DNA of 64,000 nucleotides from Neoechinorhynchus agilis (lineage: Eukaryota; Animalia; Acanthocephala): positions 3,471,489-3,535,488 of the forward strand of contig CM121342.1 in assembly GCA_051530055.1 (NCBI GenBank). Reading direction: 5' to 3'. Below are positions 3,589 through 17,332 of this stretch, in pieces; the first letter of the stretch is position 1; the number at the start of each line of letters is the position of its first letter. Under the pieces are notes generated by a model. The model was not told the DNA's origin. It worked only from the letters and a program-made list of their open reading frames with translations, and made no database searches. Made by a program: the position numbers and the translations under genes.

Positions 3589-6500
3589 TCAAAATTTAAG
3601 TTTACCCTTCTTTTTGGATGGAGGTTTTGTTATTGAACACTCTGGAGGGCTCGAGCAACTCATCCAACCGGGTAAACGTTTCTTTGACACCTCCATTTTC
3701 CGATCCGAGCGTTGCTGACTTGAACATACCGTCATGCCGTACTTCAATTTAAGGACAGACAAAATAAAGCGAAGCTCTTCCTCGCCAATATTCAGTTGAG
3801 CATCTTTTATTGTACGTCTTAGTAGTGAGAAATCTCCAATATTGGAACAAGCAGGATTCTGACGAACGCACTTTTCTACTTGATCGATCATTCGCTCATT
3901 GACGTTCAATCTTTCAATGTCCACAGGAAGTTGATGGGTCATCGCTACAACTAGACACTCAAACGCTTCTGATCTAGATTCCATTTGATCGATTGACTCT
4001 TTTTGAATTTGAAATCTTCGATATATGCTTCTTTGCTTTTCAGTCACAAACCTATTGAGCGACCTTTCAAGTTGACCGTAATCGAACATTTCATTGGACG
4101 ATTGAACCGCATGGTGTGAATTGGAAACGTTGGTGCTTAAGTCATTTTCAGCACAAAATTGATTTATAAAATCCACAAACGAGCGACCAACTGTTTCAGC
4201 TTTTGCTAAAGGAAATTCCTCGATTTGTGATAAATACGAGGTTTGAGAAGGACGCTTTCTCGCCAAACTAGCGATGCTTTTATTATTGGCTATTCTATGG
4301 GCTGGTATACCGGATTCGGCTGCTAGTTTATTCCTGATCCTGATCAATGCAGCGTAGAGTTTAGCTTCGTCTTCGTTGTTTGCATGTGAAGCCTGAACAA
4401 CTCGTCGCTGTGAGAATGAAGAATTAGCCCAAGGACGTTCGTTTATACCACAAGATTGTCGTAGTCTTTACTTTCGAGAAAAATACAAAACAGCGCCGCA
4501 AATATCTAAATGACCACAATGATCATCGCCGGATATCGAAATGCGCTTAATCAGATTAAAATTAGCACTTTCTGCTCAACGAACAAAATATGAAAGACGA
4601 AATTTGTGAACTGAAGCATCGATTTTAACATAAAAGACACCATATTATATTTTCTTAAGTCAGGATCGTTTGTAATCGATTAAGAAAAATGGGTCTTTAT
4701 GGAAATGCATCCTGAAAAAAATAAAAAGATTGCTTACCCCATAAACAAATCGAATTTATCAGGTTTTAAAGAGGAATTTTTAAACAAGGAAAATTTTCAT
4801 ATATTTCCACTAAAAAAAAGTTTCGTTTAAAAATTGAACCGACGAACCAAATCAATGGGTTAGATCACCGAAAATTACCAAACGTGAGCAAAAAACAAAG
4901 AAATTGAGCGTGCGAATGCTCAAAAGATCTATCACATAATATTCTGGGAGATGATGTAATTATTGATAAAAGTAAAATTACGGAAAATTCTAAATCAACA
5001 ATAGGATTGTGATTGAAATGTATTTGTAGAAATTTTGAAGAATAATCAACAGATAAGGACTAAGATTGAAATATGTTGTTCATAATACGACAATCTTTGG
5101 ATTACAATGATTTGCGGCAATATGCAGGTTGAAGAATATTGATTCGTCACGTTTATGGGCAACACTGATGTAGACTTTTTATTCTTTGGAGATGAAGGAA
5201 CCAACATTGATTGATTCGTGGACATCCATTGGCGTCCAAGTGAACTTATTCCAATACTGCAGGCTCCAAAAGCGACACCTTGAATGGGTATTTCGTCGAG
5301 ATATCCCAAATCGATCATTTTTCTTCCTAATAGAAAATCATTACCTTAGACGGCTTTACTAAAAGACTTACCGAATTCCTTCCACCATTGTTCACTACGA
5401 ATATTTCGTCCTGTTCCATAGTTCAACATCGACCGCATTCTATCACTAATTCTCGAGCTTGTCTAAATCAGTCTATTATCTTCGACATCAACACGAATAC
5501 TCACTGATCCGCGTACAAATTGAACGTACATCACAAGTCCATACCTTCCTCCAAGTGCCTCAATGGCACTAAAGAGAATTCGAGCTTCTTTTGTCACGTC
5601 TTCACTTGTAAGACTCGGTTCAATTGGACCTCGACTACAATTGTCGCAACAAAACTCGGTTTGATCAGCAAACGACAAAGATTCTCCAAAATGTTCAAGT
5701 ATTATTCTATCAAAAACACAAACATCATTGACGGATTAAACAAAATAGACGTAACCTTCGCCTACAAGACATTGTCGTCAAATAAACGCTCATTTTTTTC
5801 TGCATTTCGAACTGGTGCTTAGTGTACTCTTTATCTCCATCACAGTTTGCAGGAACTATTAAGCGTCTTTTAAAACCCAAATCAATATTATAGTTATGAT
5901 CGATAAGATTACCTATTTAAAGCAAGATCTTGTTTGTCGTAGAAAGCATGGCACCTGCACCGTTGACCATCTCTGCCACCTCTTCCAATTTCTTGATAAT
6001 ATGAATCCATATCGCGAGGAGCGCCATAATGAACGACATTTCTTATATCAGGTTTATCGATACCCATCCCGAATGCGATTGTGGCAACAATGACTTGACA
6101 TTCATCGTTCATAAACGCGATTTGAGCACGTGTCCGGGCATCGTTTCCAAGACCGGCATGGTAGATGCTAACGCTTAAACCTGCCTCTTTCAGATTATTG
6201 AACACTAACTCCGTCATGACTTTTGTCCGACAGTAGATGATCGTTGATCCATCAAACGATACCGTTTGGTTCTTGTTGAATGTCTCTGAAAGCATACCAG
6301 CACCGAATAAATCATTTAAAGCATGGATTCTACGAGAAAAAAAAGAAACTGCGATGAATCCAATGCTCAACGGGATTTTGACTTCTTAAAGATACTCCCA
6401 AGTATAAGTTTTTTCGGTCCACTGATGAACTGACGAACAGTGGAGATTGAAGACAAAGAGATCGTGAAATGTCCTGCCGGACAGATAATGTAGCCGTCGC

Positions 6501-8941
6501 TGTTACGGCCATGAATGGAACTTTTGGTAATTGTAGACGAAGATCTCCTAATTGTCTATAGGCAACACGGAAATCGTGACCCCATCGGGAAACGCAATGA
6601 GCTTCGTCGATTGCAAGTAAAATAATTCCTAAAAGAACATAAATCGTTTAAGAAAACAGGGTTTAAAAACCTGGGCTTTTGTTTACACAAGACAAAAATG
6701 ACCCGGATCGAATTGCGTATTCCGGAGTTATATAAACGATTTTGTATTTAGCCCTATAAAAAGAACTTGTCAAGTATTAAAGAAACATTCGTCAATGAAA
6801 TAAAAACACACAATGAACAAATGGGTTTCTGAACATTCTTGAGCTACAATGGAGCCGTCACTATTTTCAATTAAAATAAACATTGATATAATGTGCGAGT
6901 TCGCTATCGAGCAAATTAATCAAAAAAAATCTTGTTCTACAATAAGATTGAGCGAGACATCCTACAGCGATTTTTATTAGCCAAAAAAACGTAAACACTA
7001 ACAGCTACCGAATTTCTTGAAATATCAACTCGATAGATTTATTCAAAGGAGATGTGGGGATCAGAATGGAGCCGGATTAAAGCCAGTTTTTGAATATTTC
7101 GAAAGGGGAACTTCACCTCCTGTAAGTTTTTACGATTTCAGTTCGAAGGCCTCCCCTTTCGAAATATCCCAATAAAATATTTTGTATCGTGAAGGGGGGG
7201 GATTATGATCACTAACGCCACATCTTTTAAACTCTATCATCCCTAAGGATTTTCTCACTTCCACCGAGACTAATTGATTAAATGGAAATGTAATGGTGGC
7301 GTTGGTGATCATAATCCCTTTCTCTAGGTTCAATAAAATTGATTTTAGCCGGGGGGATCACTAACGCCACCATTAAGTCTTTTAAACTCTATCATCCCTA
7401 AAGATTTTCTCACTTCCACTGAGACTAATCGCAATGATTAAATGGAAATGTAATGGTGGCGTTGGTGATCATAATCCTTTCTCTAGGATAGAAAATATTT
7501 CAATAAAATTGATTTTAACCGGGGGGATCACTAACGCCACATCTTTTAAACTCTATCATCCCTAAAGATTTTCTCACTTCCACTGAGACTAATCGCAATG
7601 GATTAAATGGAAATGTAATGGTGGCGTTGGTGATCATAATCCCTTTCTCTAGGTTCAATAAAATTGATTTTAACCGGGGGGATCACTAACGCCACCATTA
7701 AGTCTTTTAAACTCTATCATCCCTAAAGATTTTCTCACTTCCACTGAGACTAATCGCAATGGATTAAATGGAAATGTAATGGTGGCGTTGGTGATCATAA
7801 TCCCTTTCTCTAGGATAGAAAATATTTCAATAAAATTGATTTTAACCGGGGGGGATCACTAACGCCACATCTTTTAAACTCTATCATCCCTAAGGATTTT
7901 CTCACTTCCACTGAGACTAATCGCAATGGATTAAATGGAAATGTAATGGTGGCGTTGGTGATCATAATCCCTTTCTCTAGGATAGAAAATATTTCAATAA
8001 AATTGATTTTAACCGGGGGGGATCACTAACGCCACCAATCTTTTAAACTCTATCATCCCTAAGGATTTTCTCACTTCCACTGAGACTAATTGATTAAATG
8101 GAAATGTAATGGTGGCGTTGGTGATCATAATCCCTTTCTCTAGGTTCAATAAAATTGATTTTAGCCGGGGGGATCACTAACGCCACCATTAAGTCTTTTA
8201 AACTCTATCATCCCTAAGGATTTTCTCACTTCCACTGAGACTAATCGCAATGGATTAAATGGAAATGTAATGGTGGCGTTGGTGATCATAATCCCTTTCT
8301 CTAGTAAAAAGATTTTAGATAACCCACTAAACTCTATCATCCCTAAGATTTTCTGATAGAAAATATTTCAATAAAATTGATTTTAACCGGGGGGGATCAC
8401 TAACGCCACATCTTTTAAACTCTATCATCTTTAAGGATTTTCTCACTTGGACGATTCATTAGATCTCTTCTGGAAGGTCAAATCTAAAAATAAAACCGAC
8501 TTACGCCATTATTTCTTGTTTTAGAGTGGACATTGCGTTTGGATTCAGTGTAGGGGATAAAAGACAAGCCGAGATGTTCACTAGTCGTAGCGAAATGACC
8601 TGGTCCTGCATAAGAGCGATCAATGGAGAAATTACAATGACAACACCAGGCTTCAAAAGCGCAGGAAGTTGATAACAAAGACTTTTCCCGTAGCCGGTTG
8701 CCATGACAGCCAATACGTCCTGATTGTCGTTGATTACAGCTTTAACGATTTGATGTTGAAGACTGCAAAAATAGGTAAAAGCACACGAGAACACACAAAA
8801 AACAATCTAACGGTTTCAACTTCTCAAATCCGAAATGTTCTCGAAGAATATTGGAAATGTGATCGGTAATATCGTCACCAATCACGTCACATAAAGACAT
8901 TATCGCATTTATTTCAGCCACCTCCTCAGAACTTAGAGCCA
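3589..8941 (-). CDS. WRN: WRN-like RecQ helicase, multi-exon, no N-terminal exonuclease domain
   Basis: Motifs [39 protein letters not shown] and [12 protein letters not shown], the Zn-binding CRR..CCDNC, and RQC and HRDC-like C-terminal exons. Confidence 0.9.
7190..8450. repeat. Tandem array A1: ~8 units of 150-175 bp, each a small inverted-repeat (MITE-like) unit, in a WRN intron
   Basis: GATCACTAACGCCAC recurs 8 times. The first unit (7199-7318) has 23-bp TIRs GGGATTATGATCACTAACGCCAC / GTGGCGTTGGTGATCATAATCCC. Confidence 0.95.
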
Positions 8942-9129
8942 TTTCGAAAAATTTGTATCTTGAAAATATTCGAGGCCGTCCAATGGTCACTCTTCGATGA
9001 TGATTCTTCCAGATCAAATATTAAAACCAATCGGATACGAGTTTTCTTTAATAAACAGTGAAATTTTCTGTAGATAATAATTCGGAAATGTTTGGTCCGG
9101 GTAACCTGAAAGGATTTTGGCTGTTATGA

Positions 9130-10269: not shown

Positions 10270-11245
10270 GAAGTCTTCACCCGCGGTAAATGATTATTTC
10301 GATTAAAAAGACGTTCTGCGAACCTCATCATCAGTTCTAAAATTCAAGTACTTAAATGGTTAATCCGCTCTCACACTCACTTATCGTTGATTGTGTTGTT
10401 TACTTTTTTGTTAGCTATGAAGGCAGAGTTTGTAACCTCGTTGGTCATTAATGTCCGGTTTTTGTTCTTTGATTTAGAAGGCTTCCTCAATTAAGAACGT
10501 CGAAAATTATTGCGTTCACTTGCTTGACCACTGGCCAGTTTGCACTCGACGCTACCACCTTCTGGGTCTTGGACCGTTTATGTTCTGTCAATTTCGTCTT
10601 CTGATTCCGACGTGTTTGTCCAATGTAATTGCTGTTTCATTGGCCATAAGAAACCTTGGGAGACAATAAGAATCTTTTCTACCTCCTGGGGTGTTTCCGG
10701 GGGAAATGAGGTTTCCTACGGAACGGATTTACACACGGTGGCTACTTTCCGGTCAACAAACAATCAAAACGCTCCTAAATTTCAACACCATAATTTTTAC
10801 CTCATTTTATTCCCCTAACGAGCAAACCCTCGAAATCGCAATTCTATTAATCCTCCCTCAACCTCGCAGATCGCTCTTCCTCCACTCCATTTTCCATACT
10901 GCCAAATCTTCTCACGGATATCGAAATGAACCGAAGGAAAGACTCTACCTTACAAATTCTCCTACAAACGATAATCACCAACTTTTTCCACTTTTGCCGG
11001 ACCTTCCAACCAGATTGGATATTCCCAACCGATCGGACCCGTATTCCACTCCAAAATCAACATGACTAACGCCGTTACCAAATCTGTCTTCATAGCTAAC
11101 AAAAATGAAACAACACTAACAGCCATAAGCGCATGTGAGAGCGGAATAACCATTTAACCACTTGTATTTTAGAACTGATGATGAACTCGATGAGGTTCGA
11201 CGAACGTCTTTTATTAAAAAATCACTTACCGGGTGAAGACTTCTA
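10270..11245. mobile_element. Segment flanked by ~95-bp inverted repeats carrying hammerhead-like cores; possibly a Penelope-like element remnant
   Basis: 10270-10365 is the imperfect reverse complement of 11150-11245. Further family copies lie at about 30628-30700 (-) and 34148-34245 (+). Confidence 0.55.
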
Positions 11246-11765
11246 AACAATAATTCCTATCACAATCCCCTCGAAACCTCGTCACATATCGACAGTTTTA
11301 CTTCTTTTTTATAATCCCTTGGCGTCGAGACGCTAGAGTCCGCTGCTCAGAACCTTATGTCCGATCCGGTGGATCTCTCGATTGCCGAAGCGCTATGCAT
11401 TAATCGTGAGAAAGTAGTGGGATTGAGCGGGGTTACGAGCAGCAAGGACGGACACAACGAGGCAGAGGGGATGCTCAATAAGAGGGATGAGCTGACGGAC
11501 AGCGTTGCCCTCCTCTGATCCTTTTCAGATAACCGAAGAAAAGCTTCCTGACGAAGACGCAAGGCGTCGAAAATTTTAAGCAAGAAATAAAACACCCATT
11601 TTCCGTTCGATAATAAATCTGGAATAAACATGAGGGTGTTGGGAAAAGAGGCTTTCCATAATATTGTAAGTGTTTTGAATGAAATATTTTTGAATTAATA
11701 AATCAGTCTCTATTCTTCTCAAGCACCAAAGAACAAGTTTATTTTTATGTATGTGTATTTCGTAA

Positions 11766-12386: not shown

Positions 12387-12700
12387 TCATTTGAACGACA
12401 GCAATGTCATGAGTTCATTTAGCTGAGGAAAATAAACAAATTCATTGTAATCGGCTTCAGTGAGTGCCAAATACGGTTTTTGGTCATTAATGACGTTAAA
12501 AATTACTTTTCTCTGGAGCAAAACCCTATCGTGGGTAATGCGTTGTGAAATCATCACATGCTTGAACGACCAAATCATTGTGGGAACAACGAATTCGCTT
12601 CTTTTTATAAATTGCTCCATGTCGTATATAGTCCTTTCGTTGATTCGGTTATTGTCATTTGGATCAAAATTTGTAAAGAATATTAAAGCTGGGTGCCGTT
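12387..12700 (-). CDS. Unidentified ~100-codon open frame that continues out of the last unit of array A3
   Basis: ORF track entry 12387..12854. The unique part (NRINERTIYDMEQFIKRSEF...LLSFK) is stop-free in AT-rich DNA, but I recognise no family. Confidence 0.25.
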
Positions 12701-15700
12701 CATGACGCCATTTTTCGTTTCTCACCCGGACTTGAGACCGTCCTTGGCTGAGTTTGATTGAGCCTCCATTCTCCTTCTCCCTCGCTCGAGAGAGGTTGTC
12801 ATTTGGATCAAAATTTGCCAAGAATATTAAAGCTGGATGCAGTTCTTGACGCAAACGATCCTCCTTCGTTTCTCACCCGGAATTGGGACCGTCCTTGGCT
12901 GAGTTTGATTGAGCCTCTATTATTATTCTCGCTCGAGAGAGGTTATCATTTGGATCAAAATTTGTCAAGAATATTAAAGCTGGATGCCGTTCTTGACGCC
13001 ATTTTTCGTTTCTCACCCGGAATTGGGACCGTCCTTGGCTGAGTTTGATTGAGCCTCCATTCTTCTTCTCCCTCGCTCGAGAGAGGTTATCATTTGGATC
13101 AAAATTTGTCAAGAATATTAAAGCTGGATGCCGTTCTTGACGCCAACGATCCTCCTTCGTTTCTCACCCGGACTTGGGACCGTCCTTGGCTGAGTTTGAT
13201 TGAGCCTCCATTCTTCTTCTCGCTCGAGAGAGGTTATCATTTGGATCAAAATTTGTCAAGAATATTAAAGCTGGATGCCGTTCTTGACGCCAACGATCCT
13301 CCTTCGTTTCTCACCCGGACTTGGGACCGTCCTTGGCTGAGTTTGATTGAGCCTCCATTCTTCTTCTCGCTCGAGAGAGGTTGTCATTTGGATCAAAATT
13401 TGTCAAGAATATTAAAGCTGGATGCCGTTCTTGACGCCAACGATCCTCCTTCGTTTCTCACCCGGACTTGGGACCGTCCTTGGCTGAGTTTGATTGAGCC
13501 TCCATTCTTCTTCTCTCTCGCTCGAGAGAGGTTATCATTTGGATCAAAATTTGTCAAGAATATTAAAGCTGGATGCCGTTCTTGACGCCAACGATCCTCC
13601 TTCGTTCTCACCCGGACTTGGGACCGTCCTTGGCTGAGTTTGATTGAGCCTCCATTCTTCTTCTCTCTCGCTCGAGAGGTTATCATTTGGATCAAAATTT
13701 GTCAAGAATATTAAAGCTGGATGCCGTTCTTGACGCCAACACCTCCTTCGTTTCTCACCCGGAATTGGGACCGTCAATGGCTGAGTTTGATTGAGCCTCC
13801 ATTCTCCTTCTCCCTCGCTCGAGAGAGGTTATCATTTGGATCAAAATTTGTAAAGAATATTAAAGCTGGATGCCGTTCTTGACGCCATTTTTCGTTTCTC
13901 ACCCGGAATTGGGACCGTCAATGGCTGAGTTTGATTGAGCCTCCATTCTCCTTCTCCCTCGCTCGAGAGAGGTTGTCATTTGGATCAAAATTTGTCAAGA
14001 ATATTAAAGCTGGATGCCGTTCTTGACGCCAATCCTTCGTTTCTCACCCGGACTTGGGACCGTCCTTGGCTGAGTTTGATTGAGCCTCCATTCTTCTTCT
14101 CCTCTCGCTCGAGAGAGGTTATCATTTGGATCAAAATTTGTCAAGAATATTAAAGCTGGATGCCGTTCTTGACGCCATTTTTCGTTTCTCACCCGGAATT
14201 GGGACCGTCCATGGCTGAGTTTGATTGAGCCTCCATTCTCCTTCTCCCTCGCTCGAGAGAGGTTGTCATTTGGATCAAAATTTGTAAAGAATATTAAAGC
14301 TGGATGCCGTTCTTGACGCCATTTTTCGTTTCTCACCCGGAATTGGGACCGTCAATGGCTGAGTTTGATTGAGCCTCCATTCTCCTTCTCCCTCGCTCGA
14401 GAGAGGTTATCATTTGGATCAAAATTTGTAAAGAATATTAAAGCTGGATGCCGTTCTTGACGCCATTTTTCGTTTCTCACCCGGAATTGGGACCGTCAAT
14501 GGCTGAGTTTGATTGAGCCTCCATTCTCCTTCTCCCTCGCTCGAGAGAGGTTGTCATTTGGATCAAAATTTGTAAAGAATATTAAAGCTGGATGCCGTTC
14601 TTGACGCCAATCTTTCGTTTCTCACCCGGACTTGGGACCGTTCTTGGCTGAGTTTGATTGAGCCTCCATTCTTCTTCTCTCTCTCGCTCGAGAGAGGTTA
14701 TCATTTGGATCAAAATTTGTCAAGAATATTAAAGCTGGATGCCGTTCTTGACGCAATTTTTCGTTTCTCACCCGGACTTGGGACCGTCCTTGGCTGAGTT
14801 TGATTGAGCCTCCATTCTTCTTCTCTCTCTCGCTCGAGAGAGGTTGTCATTTGGATCAAAATTTGTCAAGAATATTAAAGCTGGATGCCGTTCTTGACGC
14901 CATTTTTCGTTTCTCACCCGGAATTGGGACCGTCCTTGGCTGAGTTTGATTGAGCCTCCATTCTTCTTCTCCCTCGCTCGAGAGAGGTTATCATTTGGAT
15001 CAAAATTTGTCAAGAATATTAAAGCTGGATGCCGTTCTTGACGCCAACGATCCTCCTTCGTTTCTCACCCGGACTTGGGACCGTCCTTGGCTGAGTTTGA
15101 TTGAGCCTCCATTCTTCTTCTCGCTCGAGAGAGGTTGTCATTTGGATCAAAATTTGTCAAGAATATTAAAGCTGGATGCCGTTCTTGACGCCAACGATCC
15201 TCCTTCGTTTCTCACCCGGAATTGGGACCGTCCTTGGCTGAGTTTGATTGAGCCTCCATTCTTCTTCTCTCTCTCGCTCGAGAGAGGTTGTCATTTGGAT
15301 CAAAATTTGTCAAGAATATTAAAGCTGGATGCCGTTCTTGACGCCAACGATCCTCCTTCGTTTCTCACCCGGAATTGGGACCGTCCTTGGCTGAGTTTGA
15401 TTGAGCCTCTATTCTTCTTCTCTCTCGCTCGAGGGAGGTTGTCATTTGGATCAAAATTTGTCAAGAATATTAAAGCTGGATGCCGTTCTTGACGCCAACG
15501 ATCCTCCTTCGTTTCTCACCCGGACTTGGGACCGTCCTTGGCTGAGTTTGATTGAGCCTCCATTCTTCTTCTTCTCGCTCGAGAGAGGTTGCCATTTGGA
15601 TCAAAATTTGTCAAGAATATTAAAGCTGGATGCCGTTCTTGACGCCAACGATCCTCCTTCGTTTCTCACCCGGACTTGGGACCGTCCTTGGCTGAGTTTG

Positions 15701-16905
15701 ATTGAGCCTCCATTCTTCTTCTCGCTCGAGAGAGGTTGCCATTTGGATCAAAATTTATCAAGAATATTAAAGCTGGATGCCGTCCCTGACGCCAACGATC
15801 CCTTTTCGTTTCTCACCCGGACTTGGGACCGTTCTTGGCTGAGTTTGATTGAGCCTCCATTCTTCTTCTCTCTCGCTCGAGAGAGGTTATCATTTGGATC
15901 AAAATTTGTCAAGAATATTAAAGCTGGATGCCGTTCTTGACGCCAACGATCCTCCTTCGTTTCTCACCCGGACTTGGGACCGTCCTTGGCTGAGTTTGAT
16001 TGAGCCTCCATTCTTCTTCTCTCTCGCTCGAGAGAGGTTATCATTTGGATCAAAATTTGTCAAGAATATTAAAGCTGGATGCCGTTCTTGACGCCAACGA
16101 TCCTCCTTCGTTTCTCACCGGACTTGGGACCGTCCTTGGCTGAGTTTGATTGAGCCTCCATTCTTCTTCTCTCTCGCTCGAGAGAGGTTGTCATTTGGAT
16201 CAAAATTTGTCAAGAATATTAAAGCTGGATGCCGTTCTTGACGCCAACGATCCTTTTCGTTTCTCACCCGGACTTGGGACCGTCCTTGGCTGAGTTTGAT
16301 TGAGCCTCATTCTTCTTCTCTCTCGCTCGAGAGAGGTTGTCATTTGGATCAAAATTTGTCAAGAATATTAAAGCTGGATGCCGTTCTTGACGCCAACGAT
16401 CCTTTTCGTTTCTCACCCGGACTTGGGACCGTCCTTGGCTGAGTTTGATTGAGCCTCCATTCTTCTTCTCCCTCGCTCGAGAGAGGTTGTCATTTGGATC
16501 AAAATTTGTCAAGAATATTAAAGCTGGATGCCGTTCTTGACGCCAACGATCCTCCTTCGTTTCTCACCCGGACTTGGGACCGTCCTTGGCTGAGTTTGAT
16601 TGAGCCTCCATTCTTCTTCTCCCTCGCTCGAGAGAGGTTGTCATTTGGATCAAAATTTGTCAAGAATATTAAAGCTGGATGCCGTTCTTGACGCCAACGA
16701 TCCTCCTTGGTTTCTCACCCGGACTTGGGACCGTCCTTGGCTGAGTTTGATTGAGCCTCCATTCTTCTTCTCCCTCGCTCGAGAGAGGTTGTCATTTGGA
16801 TCAAAATTTGTAAAGAATATTAAAGCTGGATGCCGTTCTTGATGTCATTTTTCGTTTCTCACCCGGACTTGGGACCGTCCTTGGCTGAGTTTGATTGAGC
16901 CTCAA
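12652..16905. repeat. Tandem array A3: ~28 units of ~150 bp
   Basis: The unit CTCGCTCGAGAGAGGTT...GGACTTGGGACCGTCCTTGGCTGAGTTTGATTGAGCCTCCATTC repeats head-to-tail. Confidence 0.98.
13143..13203 (-). ncRNA. Twister-ribozyme-like motif (example copy; present in the A3 units), probably degenerate
   Basis: Minus strand reads CAATCAAACTCAGCCAAGGACGGTCCCAAGTCCGGGTGAGAAACGAAGGAGGATCGTTGG. Type-P1 twister as recalled is UAACWCNGC-(N)-GCCGGUCCCAAGCCCGG-(N)-GWGGAGGG. Confidence 0.6.
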
Positions 16906-17332
16906 TTGATTACCAAAAAGGGCCAGGTTCTATAGAAATCCCCAGAAAAACTATTATAATCCATAATTCGTTCTGACTGCGGTCTTTACTAGTCGCATTA
17001 TGCAACTGGGGCTCCATCAGGTTACTCGAAGCGTTTTCACCACAACTAAGTCTACGTTCCCTAGTCGACAGAATGCGCAAGTCTGAGAGGCACACAGCTT
17101 GTTGTTGGATATTTGGCTCCAAAAGCAGAACGCGACACATATCTCTTACCGCGTCTTAGTCTTCTCCGTTATTCCTATGTCTCTTAGTCAACTTAAATCC
17201 AACATGCAGACCACAGAAAATCCGGATGTGGACGTCGATGAGCCTTTGAAACCATTATCTACCACTTAAAATCAATGGATTCTTTTATTTTTTAAAAAAA
17301 TGGGGAAATAAATCTTTAAAAGAGAAACCATT

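Follow-up and report, generated by a model that had tools for sequence, protein, structure and literature searches.

A twister-derived satellite in the acanthocephalan Neoechinorhynchus agilis as a probable amplified derivative of an RTE-type retrotransposon

A tandem satellite on contig C2 of the acanthocephalan Neoechinorhynchus agilis repeats, about every 151 nt, a sequence that resembles the core of a twister ribozyme, and the question that this locus raises is whether the satellite is a working ribozyme repeat or the remnant of something else. We analysed a 64-kb stretch of this contig (C2:3471489-3535488, hereafter the window, whose own numbering is used unless a contig is named) within a genome of 46.2 Mb in 102 contigs, and we describe the satellite throughout in the sense of the minus strand. 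Our results argue that the array is quite probably a locally amplified, non-autonomous mini-derivative of a twister-headed RTE-type retrotransposon, and that its twister is most likely an inert genomic fossil instead of the motor of a working ribozyme satellite.

Tandem Repeats Finder (TRF) delimited one tandem array at 12652-16907 with a period of 151, 28.8 copies and 94% matches, which agrees with the satellite of about 28 copies placed at 12652-16905 by the initial annotation of this DNA. Anchored on the unit start, 29 units of 140-153 nt can be distinguished. The letters of the minus-strand unit in that annotation were confirmed as written, and all the deviations from known twisters that it listed were found again: AAA for UAA, the register GAAG/GAGGA, a competing GGAC/GUCC hairpin, which appears in both the centroid and the minimum free energy (MFE) folds, and a G>T change in the loop. 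Its supposed solo copy at 1768-1799, by contrast, is at chance level: the similarity is a bare 13-nt exact match that does not extend, chance alone would give about 1.15 exact 12-mers in 64 kb, random control windows score equally, and the site is absent from the results of both the genome DNA search and the family model R1 described below. Plus-strand open reading frames (ORFs) of 178-180 codons that cross the array were rejected as artefacts of the repeat periodicity.

Twister ancestry and anatomy of the satellite unit

At gathering thresholds, Rfam returned zero matches for the entire window. Under permissive conditions twister-P1 (RF03160) was the sole recurring match of the array among 4227 Rfam families, on the minus strand and over the full length of the model. 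The satellite units scored 17-20 bits (E 0.9-7) and did not reach the gathering score of 67.2; by itself, such a score is at chance level for a search of this size and is not significant. The same model, run genome-wide, gave 61 scored matches, the top ones with 54-60 bits (E 6e-12 to 1e-9), and these top twister heads have complete P2, P3 and P4 and keep the GAGGG strand. Since no genomic head scores above 60 bits, the gathering score is strict for this lineage. A second genomic subfamily lacks P3, as does the rice twister Osa-1-4, and has core words in common with the satellite. BLAST linked unit positions 98-143 and 1-62 to dispersed P3-less copies, several of which are themselves significant twister-P1 matches in the genome-wide search.

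A covariance model, R1, built solely from 17 dispersed P3-less heads outside the array, matched all 29 units with 36-52 bits (E 1e-8 to 1.6e-13), on the minus strand only, and found nothing else in the 64-kb window. Genome-wide it gave at least 132 matches; the dispersed heads reached 52-85 bits, and the satellite units ranked near the bottom of the P3-less heads. The Rfam check that the initial annotation had proposed hence ended below threshold (about 20 bits, E about 1), but the family-built model was significant, and the genome-wide search for intact relatives, likewise proposed there, found them at the exact 5' ends of RTE-type retrotransposons. With both model matches and intact relatives in the same genome, the twister core claimed for the unit stands, and by the sequence evidence we take the satellite core to be twister-derived by descent. 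No covariation above shuffles was detected in the dispersed heads, which is what recent copies of one master would show, and its absence neither supports nor weakens the structure. MFE folding against shuffles was equally uninformative, as even a 60-bit twister has a z of about -0.4, in line with the pseudoknotted nature of the twister fold.

The anatomy of the unit is illustrated by unit u25 (13060-13210; Table 1). Its head reads AAA/CUCA/GCC/AAGGA/CGG/UCCCAAGU/CCG/13-nt L2 strand/GGAG/GAUCG/UUGG, where GGAGGAUCG holds the general-base G and then the pseudoknot strand GAUCG, which is GAGGG in intact heads. The leader that follows is 80-90% identical to that of the dispersed heads (E down to 9e-17). 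By an internal deletion it is joined, at GAYAAC/CTCTCTCGAG, to a tail that has the terminal ...GAAGAAGAA in common with the tails of two longer retrotransposon copies (loci L041 and L064). A 13-nt block adjoins the first head at the outer flank, which is unique as far as this block, and recurs at every unit junction. We read it as a duplicated target site, from which the P1 5' strand and the N-1 base would come.

Variation among the units is not evenly spread. Units u13-u20 are mostly of a short form that lacks the entire 3' strand of the ribozyme, and several of them have the loop G>T change, a block-wise pattern that is typical of local homogenisation. At the opposite edge from the outer block copy, the terminal unit is the most diverged of all; it runs on into undeleted leader, is truncated at its 3' edge and shows no final copy of the block there. 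Its longer leader and its truncation suggest that it is the edge relic of a longer ancestral unit, with a later deletion at the edge.

Table 1. Positions of the array, of its parts and of neighbouring features in the window
Feature	Position	Strand	Basis
Tandem array	12652..16907	(-)	TRF, unit table, unit alignment
Short-form block u13-u20	13802..14960	(-)	unit table, unit alignment, feature scoring
Twister-derived head, u25	13143..13197	(-)	RF03160 alignment; R1 49.4 bits; feature scoring
GGAGGAUCG, P2 3' strand plus L1 3' strand, u25	13147..13155	(-)	unit alignment, feature scoring
RTE 5' leader of about 57 nt, directly downstream of the head, u25	13086..13142	(-)	
Last ~26 nt of the RTE 3' end (CTCTCTCGAG...GAAGAAGAA), u25	13060..13085	(-)	
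13-nt block TGGAGGCTCAATC, between RTE tail and next head, u25	13198..13210	(-)	
Outer copy of the 13-nt block (TTGAGGCTCAATC), upstream array edge, preceded by unique flank	16893..16905	(-)	
Extension of the terminal unit into undeleted leader (AACCGAATCAAC...TATACGAC), then unique sequence	12621..12650	(-)	
81-codon ATG ORF, directly downstream of the array, single-copy DNA outside the element	12387..12632	(-)	
Helicase exons downstream of the array	DEAD 8501-8794, Helicase_C 5909-6370	(-)	Pfam

Twister-headed retrotransposons in the same genome

The intact relatives show where such a head belongs. In alignments of the 5' ends of 10 P3-type copies and about 20 P3-less copies, the upstream flanks are unrelated and homology starts, in both subfamilies, at AAC, directly after the scissile bond. 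Downstream of the dispersed heads follow a common leader, a hairpin and then ORF fragments that match Exo_endo_phos, Exo_endo_phos_2 ('endonuclease-reverse transcriptase') and RVT_1, those at L041 and L064 among them. Most of these endonuclease and reverse-transcriptase matches fall below the Pfam cut-offs, which is to be expected of decayed element copies. Near-threshold domain matches of fragmentary ORFs, together with the literature, suggest that the parent elements are RTE-type retrotransposons of the non-LTR (non-long terminal repeat) kind.

Short solo elements of about 327 nt likewise begin at the twister AAC. Target-site duplications flank them, of 18 nt and perfect for the 327-nt element at L023:992-1318, and of 14 nt with one mismatch for the short element at L024. 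Positions 192-327 of the 327-nt element recur alone 2.4-4.8 kb downstream of heads, which identifies the segment as the RTE 3' tail, and the longer RTE copies at L041 and L064 end in the same tail with the terminus GAAGAAGAA. Consisting of head and RTE tail, the 327-nt solo elements are accordingly head-plus-tail deletion derivatives. The decayed RTE copy at L064 is interrupted by a non-LTR-like element of another kind (L064:2325-4594), and this insertion accounts for the head-tail distance of 4.8 kb at that locus.

These relatives suggest a course of events for the satellite. The parent ribozyme would cleave the co-transcript a single base before the element begins; every retro-copy would consequently start at the A after the scissile bond and receive the 5' strand of its P1 from the target site. 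An internal deletion would then have brought the head, that is, the twister with about 57 nt of leader, next to the final ~26 nt of the 3' end. The resulting element of about 138 nt, together with some 13 nt of duplicated target site, would make up the 151-nt period. A period composed of element plus target-site copy is the product expected of unequal exchange between target-site duplications, and such exchange most likely enlarged the array, with homogenisation thereafter. Within the array the ribozyme would have been left without maintenance, in keeping with the loss of GAGGG from all units and of the entire 3' strand from many, and with an RNA that is predicted to misfold.

The deletion junction is present only in the array and in a diverged relic at C2:3568070, about 80 kb away, a distribution that points to local amplification. 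We considered the 138-nt mini-element as a prolific mobile family and rejected this, given that the junction occurs only in the array and this one relic. The relic itself (L030, G000:C2:3568065-3568195) comprises 1.2 diverged units with the deletion junction of the satellite, an AAGU change in the loop and a lengthened L2 strand, and it reads GAAGG in place of the satellite GAUCG; it resembles an older sister of the array founder.

Related arrays of 317/239-nt head-plus-tail units were found at three loci on contig C1: L025 (G000:C1:4586500-4590700), L032 (C1:4572000-4575000) and C1:4665852-4666432. The only C1 unit with a complete twister core lies at L025:1343-1397 on the minus strand and scores 37 bits with Rfam, and most other C1 units read GGAAAAGGG, with the general base changed from G to A and a P2 mismatch, or have small deletions. 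From their sequences, units of these sister arrays would be better candidates for residual cleavage than those of the window array.

Other copies bear marks of rearrangement or recent duplication. The near-identical loci L026 and L027 (G000:C1:3841054 and C1:3908680) have an inverted copy of the leader hairpin before the twister head, and other bases stand at the start of the head; they look like a rearranged element on a segmental duplication, with the copies about 68 kb apart. The P3-type heads at L019 (C1:4199317), on a main scaffold, and L020 (C10:47701), on a small contig, have the same flanks, and the pair may stem from a haplotig that was not collapsed or from very recent duplication. 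Long perfect hairpins near twister-headed elements, at L016:504-604 and L028:1872-1965, gave sub-threshold matches to plant and animal microRNA families and are almost certainly inverted-repeat transposons, not microRNA genes.

State of the ribozyme in the satellite units

Each unit was scored for the pairs and residues that published work singles out, namely P2, P4, A1, A2, the general base and two pseudoknots, PK1 (T2) between the GC of L2 and a GC of the loop, and PK2 (T1) between CCC of the loop and the GGG of GAGGG. The A/AA motif, with the general acid A at +1 and an A at +2, is present in 29 of the 29 units, and P4 retains 3/3 pairs in all of them. P2 (CUCA/GGAG) forms 3/4 pairs in the long-form units and is absent where its 3' strand is deleted. 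PK1 consists of one G-C pair and one G-U wobble of the C31U type in 19/29 units, and is broken by G30U in 10/29. The GAGGG strand occurs in none of the 29 units, and the long form GAUCG leaves PK2 with 1/3 pairs. Nine units have lost the entire 3' strand and two have lost part of it, three have an altered P2 strand, and the GGAGGAUCG block is altered in four units besides those with full or partial deletions. The general-base G is present wherever GGAGGAUCG or a close variant is kept and absent from the nine short-form and the two partly deleted units. In 11/29 units, the best of the array, GAUCG, a P2 with 3/4 pairs, the PK1 pair plus wobble and the general-base G are all kept.

An intact self-cleaving motif in each tandem unit is hence not what this array contains, as every unit is mutated and about one third lack half of the motif. 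If the (GA)n-like tail is set aside, no block of the unit alignment varies more than the 3' strand, and 18/29 units carry an additional disabling or weakening change beyond the loss of GAGGG; together, these observations argue against selection for cleavage. Dead heads dispersed in the genome keep 92% of all pair cells (PK1 97%, PK2 94%), compared with 32-62% when the partners are slid.

Folding predictions point in the same direction as the pair counts. In intact heads the predicted cost of the nested P2+P4 fold over the MFE is 5.0-5.5 kcal/mol. For the satellite it is predicted at 13.2 kcal/mol in the homologous register and 15.4 kcal/mol in the shifted register GAAG/GAGGA, because satellite-specific changes create rival hairpins. 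One of these, CUCA-GC-GGAC with GUCC-GG-UGAG, would sequester nucleotides of P2 and PK1, and a second is predicted to sequester the 3' strand of the ribozyme.

The initial annotation had envisaged a working twister satellite that cuts multimeric transcripts into monomers or circles of about 150 nt. If this were so, at least the 11 best units would self-cleave, and multimers of the minus strand would yield RNAs of about 151 nt, or multimers thereof, with 5'-OH and cyclic-phosphate ends and possibly circles. The residues that these units retain, A1, A2, the general-base G, an intact P4 and a PK1 with one Watson-Crick pair and one wobble, are in favour of this view, as wobbles of the C31U type are tolerated by twisters (PMC11662667, PMC5113685) and as the CHiTA survey found natural twisters to tolerate defects in P1, P2 and P4, long L2 strands and any N-1 base, A included (PMC11662667). 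The shifted register would moreover keep 2/3 of the PK2 G-C pairs, and the sense strand of the twister is also the strand of the gene directly downstream, which makes read-through transcription plausible.

Yet P2 is reduced to 2 bp in the shifted register, and in the homologous register the satellite carries G47U and G48C. In the mutational scan of Osa-1-4, any change at G13, G30, A46 or G48 reduced relative activity to <0.2 (double mutants: only 30% active; PMC5113685). In CHiTA the mean f_cleaved was 0.55 with two PK2 imperfections and 0.28 with three, and twisters coped poorly with combined defects of PK1, PK2 and the general base (PMC11662667). Added to the predicted fold cost of 13-15 kcal/mol and an Rfam score of 20 bits, this makes residual cleavage by the 11 best units unlikely. 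The working satellite of the initial annotation is not supported, given the absence of GAGGG, the frequent deletion of the 3' strand and the predicted misfolding; its other proposal, that the core is what decay has left of the 5' end of a retroelement, proved essentially correct, with intact relatives at the 5' ends of RTE-type elements. There is only a slim prospect that the 11 best units and the better-preserved 317-nt relatives on C1 still cleave and would constitute a first twister-based ribozyme satellite. In that event, read-through transcripts would be cut to unit-length, ligatable RNAs, circularised and copied by the RTE reverse transcriptase, as a twister counterpart of the hammerhead retrozymes.

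Amplification route, genomic setting and known systems

It is also improbable that the array was made or enlarged at the RNA level, by reverse transcription around a circularised monomer or by 5'-to-3' template jumping, followed by integration of a multimeric cDNA. The units are complete head-to-tail elements, the 317/239-nt relatives are arrayed at three C1 loci, and twister cleavage products carry ends that RNA ligases use, all of which would suit such a route. Retrozymes offer a precedent (PMC4918200, PMC7229834). However, a 13-nt block that stands at each junction and once more in the outer flank fits target-site DNA and not template jumping, a solo element with one ribozyme could not release a monomer with two processed ends, and the confinement of the deletion junction to the array and one nearby relic points to amplification in place.

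The array is very unlikely to serve an intact retrotransposon as a functional 5' region of several monomers, comparable to the monomers of mouse L1, even though it is built of 5'-end sequence and an ORF starts immediately downstream. On the minus strand, the ~700 nt that follow the array are single-copy sequence in this genome, the ORF of 81 codons has no Pfam match and neither an endonuclease nor a reverse-transcriptase signature, and host helicase exons come next on the same strand. An exact-protein look-up of the ORF returned no record. The window holds no RTE body, and the array is unattached to any retrotransposon body; as its downstream neighbour is single-copy host sequence, we rejected the idea that the array heads an intact element. 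Finally, the notion of an ordinary satellite that contains a CGGUCCCAAG-like word by chance, to which the sub-threshold Rfam match (about 20 bits, E about 1) would lend itself, is refuted to the point of being negligible by R1 E-values down to 2e-13, by the BLAST links to significant twister-P1 heads and by homology that continues through leader and tail.

Local amplification of an inert, RTE-derived mini-element is therefore the reading that we prefer, and several points weigh against it. Simple unequal exchange predicts a tail, a target-site copy and flank at the downstream edge, which are missing there, so that at least one further deletion must be assumed. The label RTE is putative, coming from near-threshold domain matches and literature analogy. 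Eleven units still have both the general acid A and the general base G, and natural twisters are known to bear P1, P2 and P4 defects, with f_cleaved still averaging 0.55 at two PK2 imperfections (PMC11662667); the catalytic death of the satellite twister is what we infer from its sequence.

The helicase exons downstream of the array lie within 5909-9017 on the minus strand and possibly belong to a RecQ-type gene, of which the small ORF next to the array may or may not be the first exon. Four small public sequencing runs of one study contain about 30% of the array words, only as contigs of uncertain type, and the depth in these contigs, 6-7 in the flank and up to 175-345 in the repeat, fits DNA copy number. 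Two interspersed repeats at about 11360-11665 (~310 nt) and about 10753-10991 (~240 nt) have dozens of copies each with 93-97% identity genome-wide, some of them in inverted pairs, and look like miniature inverted-repeat transposable elements.

Several components of this picture have counterparts elsewhere. The RTE-type element Perere-3 of Schistosoma mansoni carries a T-variant twister at its 5' end that trims the co-transcript, with the target-site duplication supplying the P1 5' strand (Liu et al. 2021, PMC8501958), and the arrangement has been noted for the RTE superfamily in the review of de la Peña (PMC7761336). The heads described here match the Perere-3 twisters domain by domain (CUCC/GC/CCG-GUCCCAAGC-CCGG/GGAG/GAGGG/UUGG), the parsing in Table 1 of the Schistosoma paper carries over to the satellite one domain after another, and the elements also agree in starting at the A after the scissile bond, in taking the P1 5' strand from the target site and in a variable N-1. 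Unlike Perere-3, the family of the satellite lacks P3, the satellite is a head-plus-tail mini-derivative in tandem with a degenerate ribozyme, and the host is an acanthocephalan. Short internally deleted elements (SIDEs) of R2 keep a ribozyme like that of hepatitis delta virus (HDV) at the 5' end together with the 3' untranslated region (PMC6765202). The short elements at L023 and L024 fit this pattern of non-autonomous internal-deletion derivatives in which the 5' ribozyme and the 3' end that reverse transcription requires are both kept; they differ from SIDEs in that the ribozyme is a twister, not HDV-like, and the parent RTE, not R2, and in that the 138-nt version occurs only here and in one relic, its mobility being putative.

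Newt satellite 2, schistosome Sm-alpha and cave-cricket pDo500 contain intact, active hammerheads and produce abundant linear and circular monomer RNAs (PMC7229834, PMC7761336). With these satellites and the metazoan retrozymes, our array has in common that it is an animal tandem repeat in the range of 150-300 bp with a small motif of a self-cleaving ribozyme per unit and a link to non-LTR retrotransposition. In contrast to them, its motif is a twister, is mutated in every unit and has lost its 3' half in a third of them. A last comparison is with satellites derived from transposons, whose tandem arrays are seeded by transposable-element dimers, and with the 5' monomers of mouse L1. Here too a piece of a mobile element has been amplified and homogenised, with diverged edge units and block-wise variants, but the unit is a complete head-plus-tail mini-element with a target-site copy, and the array is without an element body. 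A tandem array that carries twisters did not turn up in our search of the literature.

Twister-headed RTE elements, internally deleted derivatives and transposon-derived satellites are all already known, and the array is a new example of them; with a published mechanism and an array that is probably inert, its interest is modest. Nevertheless, it joins three themes that are usually separate: a ribozyme that trims the RNA of its retrotransposon, the deletion derivatives of head plus tail to which that element gives rise, and the origin of a satellite in one of these. It also adds the acanthocephalans to the lineages with twister-headed RTE elements, and the dispersed heads, the C1 arrays and the window array form a graded natural series of decaying twisters on which the tolerance of the fold to damage could be tested. 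The array shows that a satellite may have inherited its ribozyme-like motif as a passenger, not acquired it as an adaptation, which calls for caution when genomes are mined for ribozyme satellites.

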